Both the position numbers and the translations under genes were made by a program. DNA of 64,000 nucleotides, taken from Geosiphon pyriformis uo1 (lineage: Eukaryota; Fungi; Glomeromycota). Below are positions 702 to 43,730 of the stretch, one piece after another. Numbering within the stretch: position 1 is the first letter of the stretch; each line of letters opens with the position of its first letter. Under the pieces are notes generated by a model. That model made no database searches, was not told the origin of the DNA, and saw nothing but the letters and a program-made list of their open reading frames with translations. The DNA is taken from positions 125,893-189,892 of the forward strand of contig JAAOMT010000681.1 of assembly GCA_016748015.1 (NCBI GenBank), written 5' to 3'.

Positions 702-2643
702 ATGGCGAGCGTTGAAGATATTAAACTTGAATTAAGAGATGTTAAGACCGAATATAAGAGATGCGTGGAGGAGCTGAAGGGAAAGAGTGAGAAGCTGGGT
801 GAGAAGGGAGATAAGTTAAGTGAATTGAAGAAGTTGAGAGAAGAGAAGTATGAGAACGAAAACCAAAAGAAAGAGCTAGAAAAGCAAAAAGAAAAGCTAG
901 AAGAAGTGAAGGAGGTAAAAACGAATAAAGATAGATGGGAGTTGCAGATGCAAAAACGGCAAGATAACTTTATGGAAACAAATAAGACAGGTAGCAACTT
1001 AATGACTTGAGACATAGAGTAGAGCTTAAGAAAATTTGTAAATTCACTTTTCCATCCATACTACTATTCATTTATTTTGTAATCATATGCGTTTTATGGA
1101 AGGAATATCCATATTTGAGAGAATATTTGGTTATTATACTTATTTCTTTCAATTTTCCATTCTAGAACATCTTGCGAAGCGTGCTAGACTTTACATGCCT
1201 GTTTACATGCCTGACAACACCATATCATTTCTACAACTCCTCTGTCCTCCCTTCGTTGAACCAATCACACTCGGCAATCTTGAACACTGTTTTACCTCAG
1301 CGTTACTTCAAAAATTGCCAGCTATACCCCATCTTTGCCGGGACTATGGAAATTATCTTGTACCTATAAATTCAGATGCTTTCTACAATGTTCCTAGATT
1401 GTGTGCAATCGTCAGTAACATTTTCAGCAAGTTCTATACCGAATGTTCTAGGCAAGAAGGATTAACCAAAGATGGTATCAATAATCATATTTTGGACATG
1501 ATAACATTTTTAAGCCAATATATCGCAACTCCATATCTAAGTTGGAAACGTAATGAAAGAACAGGAAAGAAGGTTCGGCCAGATATCACAGTTTATTGCA
1601 ACAACTTGCTTGTAATGAATGGTGAAGAAAAAGATGTTCGGGACAAATTATTAATCGCAGCACAAAAACTGGATGGTTATTTTCCATTTTGGAATCCACT
1701 TACCTTCGGTAACTTACCATTTGTTCTAGCCCTTGCGGCGGGAGGTACACATTTGCAATTTCACTATTACTACGTGGACGATACAACAGGCTTGACACCA
1801 AGACGTCAGACAATTGGCGAACATCTGAGCCTTGACAGTCCAAACCGAGTATACAATTATCAAGTGCTTCAGTACACAATCAATTTTTTTCGGATTCTTC
1901 GGACTTTGTGTCGAGATCAGTACATCACAGCTCCAATATTGGGGCTATACGAGAATATCATAGAGTCACATTTTAGTATTACAACACTCCCCCACAAGAT
2001 CGTTAAAAAAATAGATAGACCAAGCATTGTTGATCTAGATTTCCATAAAGAATTTTACCAAAATACGCTTCCAGGCTTAGGGCCAATCAGGGTTCTTGAC
2101 TATTACCTTACAAATCACTCAGTGGTAGTACATTTGGCTCCAGTTGGCTTTAAGAGATATCCTGAATGTGAACCCGAGCTGCGAGATGCTATACGGCATG
2201 TACTTGTAACGCTAGAAAAACTTCATAAGATGAACGTCGTCCATCGGGATATTCGCTGGGATAATGTTTTAAAACTCCTGGATGATAGTTGGATGTTAAT
2301 TGATTTGAAGAAGCTGCTCCCTTAGGAGCTTCAAGGTACAGTGATAAAAGAATTTCGACTTACGGTTAGACATGTTTGCTAATTGTTGCTATTTACTTTA
2401 CAAAGAGATTCATTGGTTATTGGAGCTCCAGAATATGAATCGGGGCAAGACTTTTGTAGCGCTGCAGGCGATATTTGGATGGTTGGAAATCTTTTCAACC
2501 ATATTCCACTTTCTTCATCCGCTCAACAGTTTAGGGAAAAATTGATGAACGAAAATCCTAATAGTCGACCGACTGCAGATGATGCTCTAAAAGATGAGTG
2601 GTTTAATTTGCCAGAGGAGCAATTATCTATAATGCAAGTTTAG
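702..2643 (+). pseudogene. Crinkler/RHS-like protein: N-terminal coiled coil + PD-(D/E)xK nuclease-like domain + C-terminal kinase; one frameshift
   Basis: Exons 702-990, 1166-2335, 2406-2643. Introns 991-1165 (GTAGCA..TCTAG, phase 1) and 2336-2405 (GTACAG..CAAAG, phase 2) join the three ORFs in frame. Motifs RPDITVYCNNLLVMNGEEK, VHRDIRWDNVL, GAPEY, DIWMVG and RPTADDALKDEWF. A missing T at ~2304 converts IDFEEAAP to IDLKKLLP*. Confidence 0.8.
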
Positions 2644-28664: not shown

Positions 28665-31146
28665 ATGGCAAACCCTACCACAATCCAAGTTGCAAAGATA
28701 GTTCCCTTCATACAAAATGCAGCCGATATATGTGGCATAATATTTCAATTGGCAACTACAGCCCAACATAATAAAGCTGTTTGTAAAGCTTTAGCAGAAC
28801 GTGTTAAAGTCAAGCAACAATGGTTAGAGCAAGAAGCACCATCAGGGAAATGTCAAAAGGCATTTGAGAAGTATATTAGTGTCCTAAAAGAAATTCGAGA
28901 ATATATTGTGGAGTTAAGAGCTCCTGGACCTTTTAGTAGTCGGTTCTTGGAAAAGTTACGAAAAAAGTTGGGGCATATGATGTAGGTTTTTTAAAGAAAT
29001 GATATCAAATATTCAATATTTTCTTTCTTTCCTTCTCTAACTTCTTTCTTAATAATGTTCATTAGGTAAAAGCAATGCATGAGGACTTCTTATGGAGACT
29101 AGAGGAGCCTGAAACCGATTTTCATCTTGATTTCGACTCCCACACACATTCAATGGTCTCCAATGCTCAATCAGTAATTTCCGAAACAAACCCTCTAGTT
29201 AAAGAATTAATTCACAAAAAGCATTAACGAGAAGAGAATTTGTTAATCAAGATTGCAATAAGCAATAAAGGCGTTGGTCCTACTCGAAAAGAAATAGAGG
29301 AGGCCGAAATTAACTATGAAGATTTTCGGGACAATGAGACAGAAAAGAATAAACCTGTTTATCGTGGTTTCCCGCAACAAATTCAGAAAAAACTATTTGT
29401 TCCAAATGGAGAGTATGTGGCATTGAAACGTCTTGGGAAGGTGAACAAAATCAAAAAGGAGAATTTAGATAATAATATCTATAAACAGATGGTTTTGTTT
29501 TCCAATTTTCAGAGCTGTACTAGTATTGAAAAGTTGTAAGTTGGGATTTTTATGATCGATCGAACCTTATTTAAACATTGAATTGCTAAATATTTAACGT
29601 GCAATTTTTTTTCATAATTTAGTTATGGAATTACAATAGAATCAAACTTTTTATATTTAGCAACCAAATGGGCCGAATTCGGTGACCTGGAGACGTATCT
29701 ATATAACAACCCGGGAATAAAGTGGAAACGAAAAGCAAAATTTGTCGCCAGTATTTCTAATGCTCTCTCATGGTGTCACTCAAGAGATATTCTTCATCAT
29801 GATATTAGATAGTAAAGAGAAAATATTGAATATTTTTTATTTTGATTGTAATTTTTATATTCTCTGGTTAATAAGATTTCTTTATTTCTTAATTATCCAG
29901 TCATAGCATATTACTCGACGATAATCTCACACCCAAATTAAGCAATTTTGCTATGAGCCGATTCAGTTTAATAGGTGCTGTAATTTTGATTAGTAGCCTG
30001 ACCCCAGGAACGAGGTATTAATTAAATGGAAATTATATTTGAATAATTTAATGTCAAAATTTTAATCTTGGCTCATACAATTACCGTTTTTCAAAAAATG
30101 ATTTCAATGCATAGATGGGCAGCACCACAAAGATTAAAATCGGCTCCATATAGTAAACAAATGGATTTCTATAGCTTTGGCATTATGATGTGGGGAATTG
30201 CAGCACAAGCATTACCATTCACTGATATTTCCTCGATTAACGAGGTAGCACTAGCTATATTTGCTGGTTCTAGGCCATCCCCAATTCCTTTAGACGCTCC
30301 AGCCGACTATTGTAGTTTAACGGAATCAGCATGGCAAGAAGTAGCCATTAGACGCCCTACCATGCAATTTTTAGCAGGTCAATTGTGTTCTCCTGCCGAG
30401 AATTTATGAAACGCAAATCTTCGTCATCTTCATTATTTCACCAAAATAATTCTTCAGAGTTGGGTATTCAAGCTCTGAGATCGAATTCCCCACTACCAGG
30501 AGTTGAAAACTCCGAAGCTATCAATGAAACATCATTAATAAAAATGACGTTTGCAAATTCAAAGGCCGAAATAGATGTCCAAATATCAGAACTTCCAGCC
30601 GTTAAACCGAGGGACCAATTACCCGACTGGGAACATCTAGAAGAAATGATAAAGGAAAATCGTCAAATAAATGAGGTGATGCCATTCATAGAAGTTCACG
30701 CTAAACAAAAAAACTTTTTCGCACAATTCTATGCCGGTAAATTTCTTTATGAAGGTGGTTCAGGGGTTGAACGTGATGAAGATCAAGCATTGGTTTATCT
30801 AAAACAAGCAGCAGATGCTCAATTGCAACCTGGTAGACGACGTTTGATTGCGCGTGCACAGTTTATGTATGCTCATGCATGTTTGAAAGGAAGTAGTTAT
30901 GATCAAACTGCTGGGATGCACTTTTTGAGACGTGCAACGCGAAATCAGGAGCCAAGAGCCTATTTGTTATATGCCCAGATCTTATTGGATGGATTACATG
31001 CCCAGCCGATTGATTTGGACGGAGCTGAAACTTTCTTGAAAAAGTACATGGCAGCTAATCCTCCTGAGATGAAAAATAAACATGTTAAAGGTAAATTCGA
31101 TAATTTAATGAAACGAGTTCAGGTGTATAAAAAACGACAAAGTTGA
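28665..31146 (+). pseudogene. MLKL-like N-terminal helical bundle + TKL pseudokinase + Sel1-like repeats; disrupted
   Basis: N-terminus AQHNKAVCKALAERVK..FEKYISVLKEIREYI. Kinase VALKRL, YGIT..KWAEFGDL, ILHHDIR, PKLSNF, RWAAPQRL, DFYSFGIMMW. Sel1-like AQFYAGKFLYEGGSGVERDEDQALVYLKQAAD. Frameshifts at ~28972 and ~30390, in-frame TAA at 29225-29227. Confidence 0.8.
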
Positions 31147-39259: not shown

Positions 39260-39990
39260 CTGATACGGAGTGGCAATTCATATGGGATCAGGAAAGATGT
39301 TAGGGGCCTCGCCACTGCTCAAGCTGAGAATTCCTCAGGTCTTCGAGGGTATTTGAGAATATAGTAAAGGACAAAGTCGACTGAAAAAGAACCGTTGTAG
39401 TATGGAAACCTAAAGTCTGGTTCAACAAGCAAGGAAACAGCTGGTTTGTCTACGTATCTGATGAAAGCTTTGCATGGGGCACTACCGGTTGCGATAAGAA
39501 AGAAACTGTATAATAAGAAATACCACAGCATCAAATATCTTAAATGTGGTAATGTGGAAACCCCGGAGCACACGTTTCTATGTAGCCGCAAGAGTGTCGG
39601 TGGCTACATCATGCTTGGAATTGTGGATGTCCTGGAATGAAACCGGTGCTGATAAATCTGGCATTGGCCGAGACTTAGGTGATTTGGCAAACTCAAGCAG
39701 GGAAGTATCGGATCTTGACACAGTGGATAGGGATGGTACTGATGCTGTCGACAAATTTAAGCCTCTAAATTAGTAAATGAGAGAATTTTTATCCCTGCAT
39801 CGTGATAGGATTTGGATTTCAAGGGTGACGAACCACGCAAATATAGAGAAATTGGGAAAGATAAGGTTTAAGGCTAAAATGCCCCGATTTATGTGGGTAA
39901 GATGTGGCATGTGGCTAGGTCATTTGTGCGCTATGGGTGTATATAGATGGTGGCTAAATTTGGCAGTTTTTTCGGTCAAGTAGGAAGTTT
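39260..39990 (+). mobile_element. 3' fragment of a related LINE (zf-RVT region), not hypermutated
   Basis: STYLMKALHGALPVAIRKKLYNKKYHSIKYLKCGNVETPEHTFLC is homologous to the decayed segments at ~5040-5170 and ~17210-17335. It retains CpGs. Confidence 0.7.
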
Positions 39991-40373
39991 GTTAATGTAG
40001 TGCAGTGTGGTTTGTTGTGCGATCCACATTTAATGTATGGTACGAGAATAGTTGGTGGTTGGATTACACCGGAAATGCAAGAAATTTTTTTTTTAATATT
40101 CATCAATCAAGATTTATTTGGGATAAGTTATAGTTTCAATTGTGGAGTTATTATTGTATACTTTGAAAATTCTACTGCATTAAAGGCTTGCGGTAATTAA
40201 TATACATTATAGGATATCAATCTTTATATTTATTTGTGGTTGCGATTGAAATGACTTTTTAAGATCTCGTTGATAGTTTTAATTTCTGATGATAAAAACT
40301 GTGGTCGTCTCAAGTTTATCAAAACGTAGACTTCGTTTTTAAGTAAAAACTTTTTGAATATTTGATCGAAATC

Positions 40374-40830
40374 ATGAAATATCAAAAGCTCACTCTCGGT
40401 GAAATAACATTAATTTTCATTGCCTGCCTTCTTGTTTTATCGATCGACGGTTTTGCATTTCCTGGTAAGAGTAATTTTGTCTACTCAGCATTAATGACCC
40501 ATAATACGGAATTTAAGAATCATTTTTTTATCAAGAATATGTAACACAATGCGACCCACCACCAACCTGCAATAATCCGTGTGAAGTTGTTCGTTGTGGA
40601 TCCCTCAAACCAATGTGTGTATCGGTTCCCGCAGAGGATTGCCAGTCATGCCCCACAGCTGCTTGCGTGAGTTCTGGTAAGTTAAGGGAAAACTTGATCT
40701 CAACAAATATAGTAAGTCATGATAATATAACAAATTGATTATAGACGAGCCTGAAGAAGGACCTAAAGGCTGGAAACCTGAAAAAACCCCTAAAGGCTGG
40801 AAAATTGGCAATCCCCATTGGAGTTGGTAA
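40374..40830 (+). CDS. Small secreted 8-cysteine protein (paralog 1)
   Basis: Exons 40374-40464, 40536-40676, 40745-40830 with canonical phase-1 GT-AG introns. Product MKYQKLTLGEITLIFIACLLVLSIDGFAFPEYVTQCDPPPTCNNPCEVVRCGSLKPMCVSVPAEDCQSCPTAACVSSDEPEEGPKGWKPEKTPKGWKIGNPHWSW*. Confidence 0.8.
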
Positions 40831-40876
40831 CAAATTATTATGAATTTCCTGGTTAGTCTCAATAGTAGAAAGAAAT

Positions 40877-40905
40877 AGAGAGAGAGAGAGAGAGAGAAAG
40901 AGATA
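40877..40905. repeat. (AG)n microsatellite
   Basis: Direct reading of the sequence. Confidence 0.9.
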
Positions 40906-41394
40906 AAGAAAGAGACATTTTAGGTTAGCATAGAATCCTGTATTTCATTCAACCCAATAAAAGATAAAGAAAATCTAATTGAGAATTTCACGTTTTCTGT
41001 TGATTCTCTCTTTGTTCTCAGTCGTTATAACATAATTCTTTTGAATGACAATTTAGGAAAATAATATATATTTTTTGTATTTAATAATCATTTAGAATAC
41101 TAAATATAAAAATAATAATAATGTTATTATTATTATTATTATAGTTATTGTTATTGTTATTGTTGATAGTTTTATTAAATTGGAACGACCCCTTGCTTTC
41201 GTTGGTTAGCTAAAGTGGTGCAAAATAAATTTTAGGGAATTCTAGAATTTATGACTATTGAGGGTGGCTGGGTGATTTTTCATGGAGATCCCCATCAATC
41301 ATATAAAAACCTATCGTGACGAGAAGAAAAAATCACGGAAAAAAATCCAAAAACCTCAATTTCTCTTTCAAATCGAACGAAATTATATTCTAAA

Positions 41395-41919
41395 ATGAAA
41401 AACTTTCAAATCTTGCTCGTATCAGTATTTGCAATTATTTTTGCCATCTTTGTCTCCACTTCTTCTGCTAGTAAGTTTTAAATTTATACAGTTTATCATC
41501 TCGCAACAATTAATTGATAATATAAATTAATTAAATTAATTCCAACACTTTATCACTCTCTCTTAACTCTTAACTCTGTTCTTTTTTAAACAGGTCCTAC
41601 ATGTCAAAACACTGTACAATGTTTTGCTTATCCTTCGTGTGCCTCTCACCAGTGCCCCTATGGCTGTAAATGTATAGTTATTGAACCCTCATGCGGTAGT
41701 TGTGGTGAGGCTAAATGTGTTCCTTTAGGTATTTGATAAAAATATTTTATTTTTAAAACATCTTGAGAATTATATAGTCATTAATTAAAAGGATTTGAAT
41801 TCTCTTATGAACTTAAATTAATAGGTTACGGAGGAGGGTGGTCATATGGAAAGGGTAAAGATTACGGTTACGGTTGGCAAACCAATAATTCATGTGATAA
41901 CCAGAGTGTCCTTTACTAA
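41395..41919 (+). CDS. Small secreted cysteine-rich protein (paralog 2)
   Basis: Exons 41395-41470, 41594-41728, 41825-41919, both introns phase 1. Product MKNFQILLVSVFAIIFAIFVSTSSASPTCQNTVQCFAYPSCASHQCPYGCKCIVIEPSCGSCGEAKCVPLGYGGGWSYGKGKDYGYGWQTNNSCDNQSVLY*. Confidence 0.85.
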
Positions 41920-43029
41920 GGATTTAAATATTGAATTAACAAATTGCTAGATTTTTTTACATTGATTCTCAACGGTGTTTTAAAAATTTCGAATAGTAGT
42001 TTTTTTGTTTACTTGTTTAGTTGTTTCACGTTTTGTATCTTGTGATATTAGGAAAGATAAATTTTTGAATTCTCAGATGTCGAGGGAATAAAAATATATT
42101 ATCCTAACGAAGGAACGAAGTGAAAATTCCCCCCGAATAGCTTTAAGAAGACATTTTTGTACTCCTTAATTACGCAATATTTCTAATAAGAAAAACTTTG
42201 TAGTTTCAACAATAAAGAAAAACTTTTTTTCATATAAAGAGACAATTTAATTAATTAAAGAGAATATGACTCGAAGAGTACATTGATCATTTGAGTGCAT
42301 TTCTTTGTTAAAAAAACAAAATACACCCCGCGTTCACTTTTATTTATTATGGTACTATGCCAAATTTGATACATGTACTTGATCGACTCTTACCGCTGCT
42401 TCCATATTGTGATTGGGGTTTCACAGGGTTAGAGATACTGCCCATGATTAGAACGTGAAAATTTTGACTAGACTAAATAAGACAATAAATTTCTCATCGC
42501 CTCACACAATACTAGTTTTTGAAATTTTGATTAGTCACGATCAGATATAAAATTAATGACTTTCTAGCTTCTTTCGAATAAAAGGAAGTTGCTTGATCAA
42601 ATTTAACATAGCTACTACTTGCAGCTTCAAAAAGATCCTCTGCTTATTTCAACTAGGCTTAGACCATAAGAATGGAGTAAGTTTTAAGAAAATTAATTTT
42701 TGTTTCCCTATTTTTCTATGATGCTTTCTCAACCTCCAATTGTTTTGACTTGATCTTGCAAGATCATTAATGAAAATACATGACTATTCTGAAGAAATTC
42801 GATTTTTCTTTTCATAATTAATTTTTTACAAGCGATTCATAATTATTAACTCCCCGAAATTATACCAATTACCTTTTTTTTTACACGTTTAGAATGATTT
42901 TCTAGGTCAATTTGAACTTGCAATTGATTTAATGTTTCTTATTCTTATTCTATCTCATAAAGGCAACAGTTATATTTCAAATTTTTAAGATAGAAGAAGT
43001 TTACTTGATGATCGCATAATAACATGAAT

Positions 43030-43064
43030 TTACTGATTTAGTTCATATATAGCTCCTCTTAATT

Positions 43065-43095
<31 letters not shown>

Positions 43096-43494
43096 ACGGC
43101 CCCTAACACCCTTGTCTCGTCCTCTACCCCTTCTTCTCCCATTCGAATTAACCCGGCCAAGGTTACCTTCATCTTCATCCTCCGGATCTATACACTCATA
43201 GCTTCCACAATCATAACACGTTTTTGCAATATCTACGCAAATTAGGGATGAAGAACACGGGTTAGATAAACAGTGGTCAATTGTTGGGCATACGGTGCAC
43301 ACGGCTATTTAGGGGTAGTTTAGAGAAAAGCAAGAAACAAAAAATTTAAACGCGAATTACAGCAAATCCTCTTATCGAGAATTTTATTCAATGAATAGAT
43401 TTTAATCTAGCTCAGAAGTTGGATGGCTGTTGCAGGCCAGGAAAATACAGAGAAAACGAAAAGATTTTGAAAAGGAAGCTAAGCGTGATTTCAT
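43030..43494 (-). pseudogene. Small secreted 8-cysteine protein (paralog 3), first splice donor apparently mutated
   Basis: Exon 1 43494-43416 (MKSRLASFSKSFRFLCIFLACNSHPT) is in phase with the acceptor at 43305-43306 only if CTGAGC at 43415 was GTGAGC. Exon 2 reads VCTVCPTIDHCLSNPCSSSLICVDIAKTCYDCGSYEC plus an acidic then Gly/Arg-rich tail. Confidence 0.65.
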
Positions 43495-43730
43495 AAAATC
43501 CGCACATTTTTCCAGAGAATTTCTTGCGTTTCAAGTTTCAAAGGAACACTGATTAATATCGTAAAGGTGGAACTATCTTAAATATAAGTTTGTCTTTGTT
43601 TGATGGTACATTTCTTTTGACCAAAGGATTTAGGGACTACTTAAGTCAAAACACGAAGTACAACCTAATTATTTCTCGCTGAATTACATATAGAAATTAT
43701 TAACATATTATATAATTCACACATCTAATA

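Follow-up and report, generated by a model that had tools for sequence, protein, structure and literature searches.

We identified a locus in the genome of Geosiphon pyriformis, a fungus of the Glomeromycotina with intracellular Nostoc, that probably encodes a small tandem cluster of short secreted proteins, each with a signal peptide, a module of about 40 residues knotted by disulfides, and a low-complexity tail of hydrophilic character. The likely origin of the module is the cysteine-rich (CR) domain that the membrane anchor Opy2 exposes outside the cell, and we assign this reading a probability of about 0.6. That the proteins are, in identity and architecture, secreted peptides with an Opy2-derived module is a narrower claim that we hold with high confidence. 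To our knowledge, Geosiphon is the sole fungus with cyanobacteria inside its cells. The locus lies in the terminal 64 kb of a contig of 189,892 bp (assembly size 128 Mb); this whole stretch is referred to as the window, and all positions are window positions unless another contig is named by its short label (C404, C549 and so on). Three small genes for cysteine-rich proteins of the secreted type occupy positions 40374-43507, namely G1 and G2 on the plus strand and G3 on the minus strand.

G2 is transcribed, spliced as modeled and polyadenylated. Its coding sequence (41395-41919, plus strand) comprises three coding exons and two phase-1 introns and specifies 101 residues. Exon 1 (41395-41470; 25 codons plus 1 nt) encodes a predicted signal peptide with a 12-residue hydropathy maximum of 3.16 and a c-region ending in SSA, and closes with the phase-1 donor A/GTAAGT (the slash marks the exon border), which is confirmed by a transcript contig. 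Exon 2 (41594-41728), for which gene model and contig agree, carries an Opy2-type core with nine cysteines. The coding part of exon 3 (41825-41919, stop codon at 41917-41919) encodes a Gly/Tyr/Trp/Lys-rich tail with a tenth cysteine, so that the total number of cysteines is even (nine in the core and one in the tail). The transcript data are contigs from the only public sequencing run that matched part of the locus, aligned to positions 40300-43600; the 30-C run of G3 and the simple repeats between G1 and G2 were skipped in this comparison. A 601-nt contig aligns in the pieces 41335-41470, 41594-41725(+3) and 41822(+3)-42126, and the gaps between them run GT..AG and are exactly the two G2 introns. 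The transcribed region thus spans 41335-42126, with the 5' end as a minimum, and terminates in 21 non-genomic A's after position 42126, 34 nt past an AATAAA signal (42087-42092) and 207 nt past the stop codon. This poly(A) contig holds no further exon downstream of the G2 stop. Because the transcript reaches its poly(A) tail without an additional exon, G2 lacks a transmembrane (TM) segment, and a downstream TM exon, which we had considered, is rejected. The k-mer depth of the contig is ~1984, a quantity that reflects expression poorly and comes from a coded sample. A second contig with a depth of 4.9 matches the 5' end of G2 with eight differences, followed by 142 unmatched letters; it is the transcript of a G2 paralog with a core diverged by more than 10%.

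G1 (40374-40830, plus strand) has the same design, with three exons, two phase-1 introns and 105 residues in the gene model. Exon 1 (40374-40464; 30 codons plus 1 nt) contains the start codon and a predicted signal peptide with a 12-residue hydropathy maximum of 3.27 and ends at the phase-1 donor G/GTAAGA. Exon 2 (40536-40676; acceptor ..ATCAAG/, donor G/GTAAGT) encodes an eight-cysteine core with the spacing C-x5-C-x3-C-x4-C-x6-C-x7-C-x2-C-x4-C. Following an intron that ends in TAG/, exon 3 (40745-40830) encodes a Lys/Gly/Trp-rich hydrophilic tail without any hydrophobic stretch and closes with a TAA stop (40828-40830). G1 is intact with regard to its ATG, signal, both splice sites, all eight cysteines and stop codon. 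The stop and the C-terminus are kept in its paralogs, and the copy on contig C617 retains both the frame and the C-terminus.

G3 (43030-43507, minus strand) is decayed. Core and tail lie in one open reading frame (ORF; 43030-43302) without a core/tail intron, with a phase-1 acceptor (..AAATAG/) just upstream. The core has the spacing C-x2-C-x5-C-x4-C-x5-C-x6-C-x2-C-x4-C and a net charge of -6, the Arg/Gly-rich tail one of +6, and the protein is 73-82% identical to paralogs on C597 and C617. These paralogs possess an ATG, a hydrophobic signal peptide and then a phase-1 A/GTAA donor. Aligned with them, the decayed signal exon of G3 covers 43395-43507, where 43507 corresponds to the paralogs' start ATG. 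Two nucleotides are missing between 43447 and 43446, which breaks the frame, and about 44 nt are missing between 43396 and 43395, including the paralogs' phase-1 donor. Only short ORFs survive in this region (43534 to 43412 and 43494 to 43402); the 30-codon ORF starting with the ATG at 43494 is only weakly hydrophobic (12-residue Kyte-Doolittle (KD) maximum 1.54 vs 3.2-3.3 for G1 and G2) and runs into a stop without a usable donor. In the tail, a run of 30 C (43066-43095), which reads as poly-Gly codons on the minus strand, stands where the paralogs have RGG repeats, and the frame after it departs from their conserved C-terminus. The length of this homopolymer may be an assembly error; for the two deletions such an origin is less likely.

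All three proteins end 27-48 residues past the core and have no cytoplasmic part. Their tails are hydrophilic throughout, with a maximum KD value over 19 residues below 0 and a combined fraction of G, Y, W, R and K of 0.48-0.62. A glycosylphosphatidylinositol (GPI) anchor was considered and rejected, as no tail has a hydrophobic C-terminus.

In the public annotation, the cluster is represented by the 246-residue "hypothetical protein" KAG9287200.1 (gene model G9A89_001608), a chimera of G1 and G2 that contains neither signal peptide. The model starts with upstream pieces at 39297-39347 and 39570-39734, skips the G1 signal exon, continues with G1 exon 2 (residues 84-129) and G1 exon 3 minus its last two residues (residues 131-155), skips the G1 stop and enters G2 in the middle of the signal peptide, whose exon contributes its last 14 residues (157-170); G2 exons 2 and 3 follow as residues 172-215 and 217-246. 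Its internal junctions agree with G1 intron 2, where the junction of exons 2 and 3 is identical to ours, and with both G2 introns. The G2 contig begins at 41335 and crosses the G2 start codon without a break, which contradicts the fusion. Secretome and effector surveys based on the public Geosiphon annotation will miss G1 and G2; the corrected models can be used immediately. The ORF that contains the upstream exon of the chimera (39540-39780) recurs once elsewhere in the genome (C635:78357-78596), with 73% DNA identity.

A first-pass annotation of the window had proposed three small genes at this locus, each with a signal peptide and a core of eight cysteines, two of them intact and one broken, and had remarked that they are poorly captured as ORFs and devoid of TM segments. 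The reading frames are all present at the positions it gave, the division into two intact genes and one broken gene is borne out, the chimeric public model illustrates the poor capture, and the polyadenylated transcript of G2 together with the hydrophilic tails agrees with soluble products. Its eight-cysteine description fits G1 and G3 and has to be amended for G2, with nine cysteines in the core plus the tenth in the tail. Likewise, the proposed signal/core/tail exon design applies to G1 and G2 and fails for G3, which lacks the core-tail intron and has lost the donor. Its introns, for which it had suggested a check by transcripts, are confirmed exactly at both G2 junctions, with no contig over G1 or G3.

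Opy2 of Saccharomyces cerevisiae is a membrane anchor in the Sho1 branch of HOG, the high-osmolarity glycerol pathway, and its CR domain is described by the Pfam model PF09463. G2 and G3 belong to the superfamily of this domain. In a leave-out test, we searched each group with a profile of the genome's Opy2 modules that had been built without the tested group, using shuffled sequences and 838 background ORFs as controls. G2 scored 26.6 bits and G3 22.2 bits, compared to 10.8 and 12.4 bits for the best of 1,200 composition-matched shuffles, and the best background ORF reached about 7 bits. PF09463 itself comprises 35 positions and has a gathering cutoff of 22.1 bits. Across the genome, 20 modules exceed this cutoff, among them a G2-like paralog on C404 with 25.6 bits, and 11 of 15 aligned family cores match the model at E <= 1, the best with 6.5e-7. 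G1, G2 and G3 all have paralogs elsewhere in the genome in which the cysteine columns are conserved. Since these columns are kept and neither shuffled sequences nor background ORFs come near the scores of G2 and G3, the cysteine-rich reading frames are not a product of chance. A match of the cores to the WAP domain (E = 0.38) was rejected as noise from the cysteine pattern.

Structure prediction points in the same direction. The AlphaFold2 (AF2) model of the G2 core has a predicted local distance difference test score (pLDDT) of 85.8, and its top shape match in the ESM-Atlas is the cluster of Opy2 N-terminal domains, 90% of whose members carry PF09463 (template-modeling score 0.65 over 42 of 44 residues, root-mean-square deviation 2.6). 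The G1 core model (pLDDT 81.2) shows the same C-terminal hairpin. Other searches returned little: in the feature search of the ESM-Atlas, the top score for G2 (0.80) was in the chance range and G1 yielded nothing, Foldseek and VIA-align found no meaningful neighbor in the PDB (best Fstl1 with E = 7 and neurexin with Z = 2.0), and a sequence-profile search of the PDB gave nothing below E = 0.14, the best hit being a 'late nodulin' without significance. These fold and sequence searches of the PDB also brought up no solved structure of the Opy2 CR fold. Small expressed modules such as these could be convenient objects for structural work on the domain.

The cysteine spacing in the genome's canonical Opy2 is C-x2-C-x5-C-x2-C-x5-C-x6-C-x2-C-x4-C. 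The cluster resembles yeast Opy2 in its cysteine module of about 35-40 residues, and G3, with eight cysteines, departs from the canonical spacing in a single loop that is longer by two residues. In G2, the first loop is extended and a ninth cysteine is added to the core, besides the tenth in the tail. According to the alignment, the first canonical cysteine is lost in G1 and one has been gained in a loop; only the last four cysteines of G1 are in register. G1 is probably a remodeled member of the family, because it shares exon design, intron phases and a cluster that is duplicated as a unit with G2. In contrast to Opy2, the genes of the window lack both a TM segment and the cytoplasmic Ste50-binding region and instead combine a predicted cleavable signal peptide with a short low-complexity tail.

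Homology and profile searches revealed at least 36 distinct modules. They are spread over 10 contigs, with 26 on C549, C597 and C643, and many stand in tandem. A 448-residue ORF on C669 (at about 1,236,256) is likely the canonical Opy2 ortholog: its N-terminal CR domain scores 34 bits against PF09463 and is followed by a TM segment, basic residues of the stop-transfer kind and a long tail rich in Ser, Thr and Pro. Since this TM-bearing Opy2 is encoded separately, the small genes are additions to the ortholog rather than replacements. In a single-exon ORF of 163 residues on C597 (about 190.4-190.9 kb), a signal peptide precedes three tandem modules and a TM segment is absent. By its predicted architecture, this ORF represents another type of secreted Opy2 protein, one with several modules; a near-duplicate is located at C597:180541-180804. 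Dense arrays are present at C549:433985-436249 and C549:389779-390369, with at least six modules in 2.3 kb and four modules in one 200-residue ORF. The profile search also picked up Trp-rich variants with several W between the cysteines (C643:278055-278189 and C597:261822-261956).

Secreted modules of this type are apparently not restricted to Geosiphon. A search of 1.84 billion proteins with the family profile gave 10 matches at E <= 1e-3, including one apparent spurious repeat protein. Nine matches were looked up, of which two are Geosiphon's own; TM-less proteins of early-diverging fungi (E = 1e-10 to 9e-4) and two unnamed metagenome proteins are among the others. RIA94411.1 of Glomus cerebriforme (63 residues) and KAG0038769.1 of Podila clonocystis (79 residues) resemble the cluster proteins in that a signal peptide is followed by an Opy2-type module without a TM segment, and multi-module proteins of Mortierella and Syncephalis likewise combine a signal peptide with Opy2-type modules and no TM segment. 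However, these proteins lack the G/Y/W, K/G/W and R/G tails and are not close; the only strong matches are Geosiphon's own. A word-based homolog search gave no candidate for the G3 core and recovered only the query itself for the 63-residue protein of Glomus cerebriforme. No paper on secreted proteins with an Opy2 domain turned up in our literature search.

Segmental duplication has copied the cluster as a whole. On C617 and C597, G1-like and G3-like copies flank remnants of G2; C644 has copies resembling G1 and G2, and copies resembling G2 occur on C727 and C404. Some of these paralogs are degenerate, with a lost cysteine or an in-frame stop in copies on C644 and C597. Within the G1 group (G1 and three paralogs), DNA identity is 91-97% in the signal exon, 80-84% in intron 1, 90-91% in intron 2, 87-91% in the tail and 70-77% in the core. 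The ratio of nonsynonymous to synonymous substitutions (dN/dS, Nei-Gojobori) of the core is 1.65-2.31 and rises to 2.8-3.9 without the cysteine codons, and nonsynonymous divergence per site in the core amounts to 31-32% compared to 13-15% in the introns (p = 0.002). For the G2 group, the corresponding identities are 92-99% in the signal exon and 78-84% in the core, and the tails vary in both length and sequence (67-77% with many gaps). A conserved signal next to a hypervariable cysteine-rich part is therefore found in the G1 and G2 groups and not in the G3 group.

The proteins of the cluster would enter the secretory pathway and lose their signal peptide, the cores would fold into a knot of four or five disulfides, and the processed proteins would act extracellularly as soluble binding modules. 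We tentatively favor, by analogy, a role that resembles that of effectors or is directed at microbes (Nostoc or others), at the interface formed by the wall or the symbiosome, over a housekeeping function, although we rate this role somewhat below even odds. The preference for a non-self target stems from the combination of conserved signal and hypervariable core, a pattern known from secreted peptides that keep pace with variable non-self targets.

Several observations weigh against parts of this picture and are gathered here. The cores of G1, G2 and G3 all remain under the gathering cutoff of PF09463 in the Pfam scan: G1 has no match, and the matches of G2 (13.4 bits, E = 0.097, profile positions 2-35 of 35) and G3 (9.7 bits, E = 1.5) do span the whole model. 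G1 is not recognized by the leave-out profile either, its 8.4 bits being equaled by 4 of 900 shuffles, and hhalign aligns only its C-terminal 25 columns with the last four or five cysteines (P = 1.4e-4, probability 52%). The fold match of G2 is not fully independent, since canonical Opy2 modules were included in the alignment given to AF2. Pfam scans, profile searches and folding were run on single exons, and signal peptides were called solely from hydropathy together with the -3/-1 rule. In the single run used, neither G1 nor G3 is covered by a transcript contig, which does not imply that they are silent, as contigs cannot show absence. Within the 40-codon core of the G1 group, the comparison of dN with dS is not significant (p = 0.25-0.47, small counts). 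Core dN/dS in the G2 group is mixed (0.37-1.79), with some pairs at 0.37-0.63 and hence not diversifying, and the values of the G3 group (0.47-0.65) indicate mild constraint rather than diversification. Finally, mature G1 and G2 have a net charge of about 0, unlike most cationic antimicrobial peptides, and a classical peptide of that kind is therefore disfavored.

Given these results, the view of the first-pass annotation that the genes are rapidly diversifying paralogs with Opy2-like cores needs to be narrowed. The resemblance to Opy2 persists for G2 and G3 in the leave-out profile and for G2 in its fold, short of the Pfam cutoff in every case and restricted to the C-terminal half in G1. Paralogy is recognized by profile for G2 and G3; for G1 it is not shown by sequence. 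Judged from the substitution patterns, the apparent rapid diversification holds for one subgroup (G1) and partly for a second (G2) and does not hold for the third (G3).

Just one activity of the module is known, that of yeast Opy2, whose CR domain binds the glycosylated HMH (Hkr1-Msb2 homology) region of the mucins Hkr1 and Msb2 (PMC13233613). Being the only function of the module established by experiment, this binding suggests that the cluster proteins could be self-directed decoys, i.e. soluble CR domains that compete with the fungus' own Opy2 for the HMH regions of Msb2/Hkr1-type mucins and thereby tune Sho1-branch mitogen-activated protein kinase signaling (in osmostress or filamentation) of Geosiphon or of neighboring fungi. 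The retention of a canonical TM-bearing Opy2 beside many TM-less copies and the G3-group cores, which are under mild purifying selection and near-canonical in spacing, would agree with such decoys. Yet a decoy of a self-receptor should be conserved, whereas the cores of the G1 group outpace their introns and the spacing or number of the cysteines is altered in G1 and G2, so that we regard this explanation as unlikely.

We consider it similarly improbable that the proteins are structural components of the cell surface, in which the cysteine knot would serve as a stable head and the tails would tether or cross-link it in the hyphal or bladder wall, so that they would be wall, adhesion or surface-property proteins and not effectors. 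In favor of this, G, Y, W, R and K make up about half of the tails, paralogs largely keep the G1 tail together with its stop, and glycine-rich surface proteins have been reported for Geosiphon and arbuscular mycorrhizal fungi (PMC8786786). The contrast in depth between the G2 contig and that of its paralog would fit an abundant product, as far as this poor measure can be used. On the other hand, neither a GPI signal or hydrophobic C-terminus nor any wall attachment is found in the sequences, the G2-group tails vary widely, and hypervariable cores would be unexpected for a structural head. The least probable of the rival explanations is evolutionary debris, according to which only G2 works, G1 and its relatives decay like G3 as duplicates in a repeat-rich region and the high dN/dS reflects relaxed constraint: the clear decay of G3, the degenerate paralogs, the missing contig over G1 and the core dN and dS that do not differ significantly when taken alone speak for it, but G1 is intact from ATG to stop, with the C617 copy in the same frame, and relaxed constraint cannot push nonsynonymous change past that of the introns next to a signal exon that is so highly identical.

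Judged from the architecture of these genes, a domain known only as the outer part of a membrane signaling anchor is encoded here in soluble, secreted form. In this fungus it has expanded to at least 36 copies, with at least one subgroup evolving faster than neutral sequence. We know of no host-side molecular players in the symbiosis between Geosiphon and its cyanobacteria, and the modules are candidate molecules for communication between the fungus and the intracellular cyanobacterium. A comparison can be made with the cysteine-rich peptides specific to the nodules of legumes (NCR peptides), small secreted host peptides that show a conserved signal, a hypervariable mature part and local duplication and whose hosts house intracellular nitrogen-fixing bacteria (PMC7230169). 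NCR peptides, however, are defensin-like, possess four or six cysteines and are often cationic, whereas the scaffold in the window is of the Opy2 type with 8-10 cysteines and G1 and G2 are not cationic. It is a speculative and rather improbable extension of this comparison that the Opy2 knot was recruited as a large secreted family, duplicating locally and diversifying in part, to recognize or control Nostoc or other associated bacteria and would represent a convergent fungal counterpart of the NCR peptides on an unrelated scaffold.

The surroundings of the cluster are AT-rich (GC content of about 16-33% in the window), and ten ORFs of at least 110 residues are present in the 64 kb. One of these regions (1087-2325, plus strand) is an ORF with a partial protein-kinase domain that stays under the cutoff (E = 4.6e-5), and another (30385-31146, plus strand) is an ORF with Sel1 repeats (E = 6e-8). 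Protein-kinase and Sel1 genes are typical of the expanded gene families of Glomeromycotina. The interval between G1 and G2 contains microsatellite sequence of the (GA)n type as well as (TTA)/(TTG)n repeats, at positions 40864-40918 and 41095-41174.

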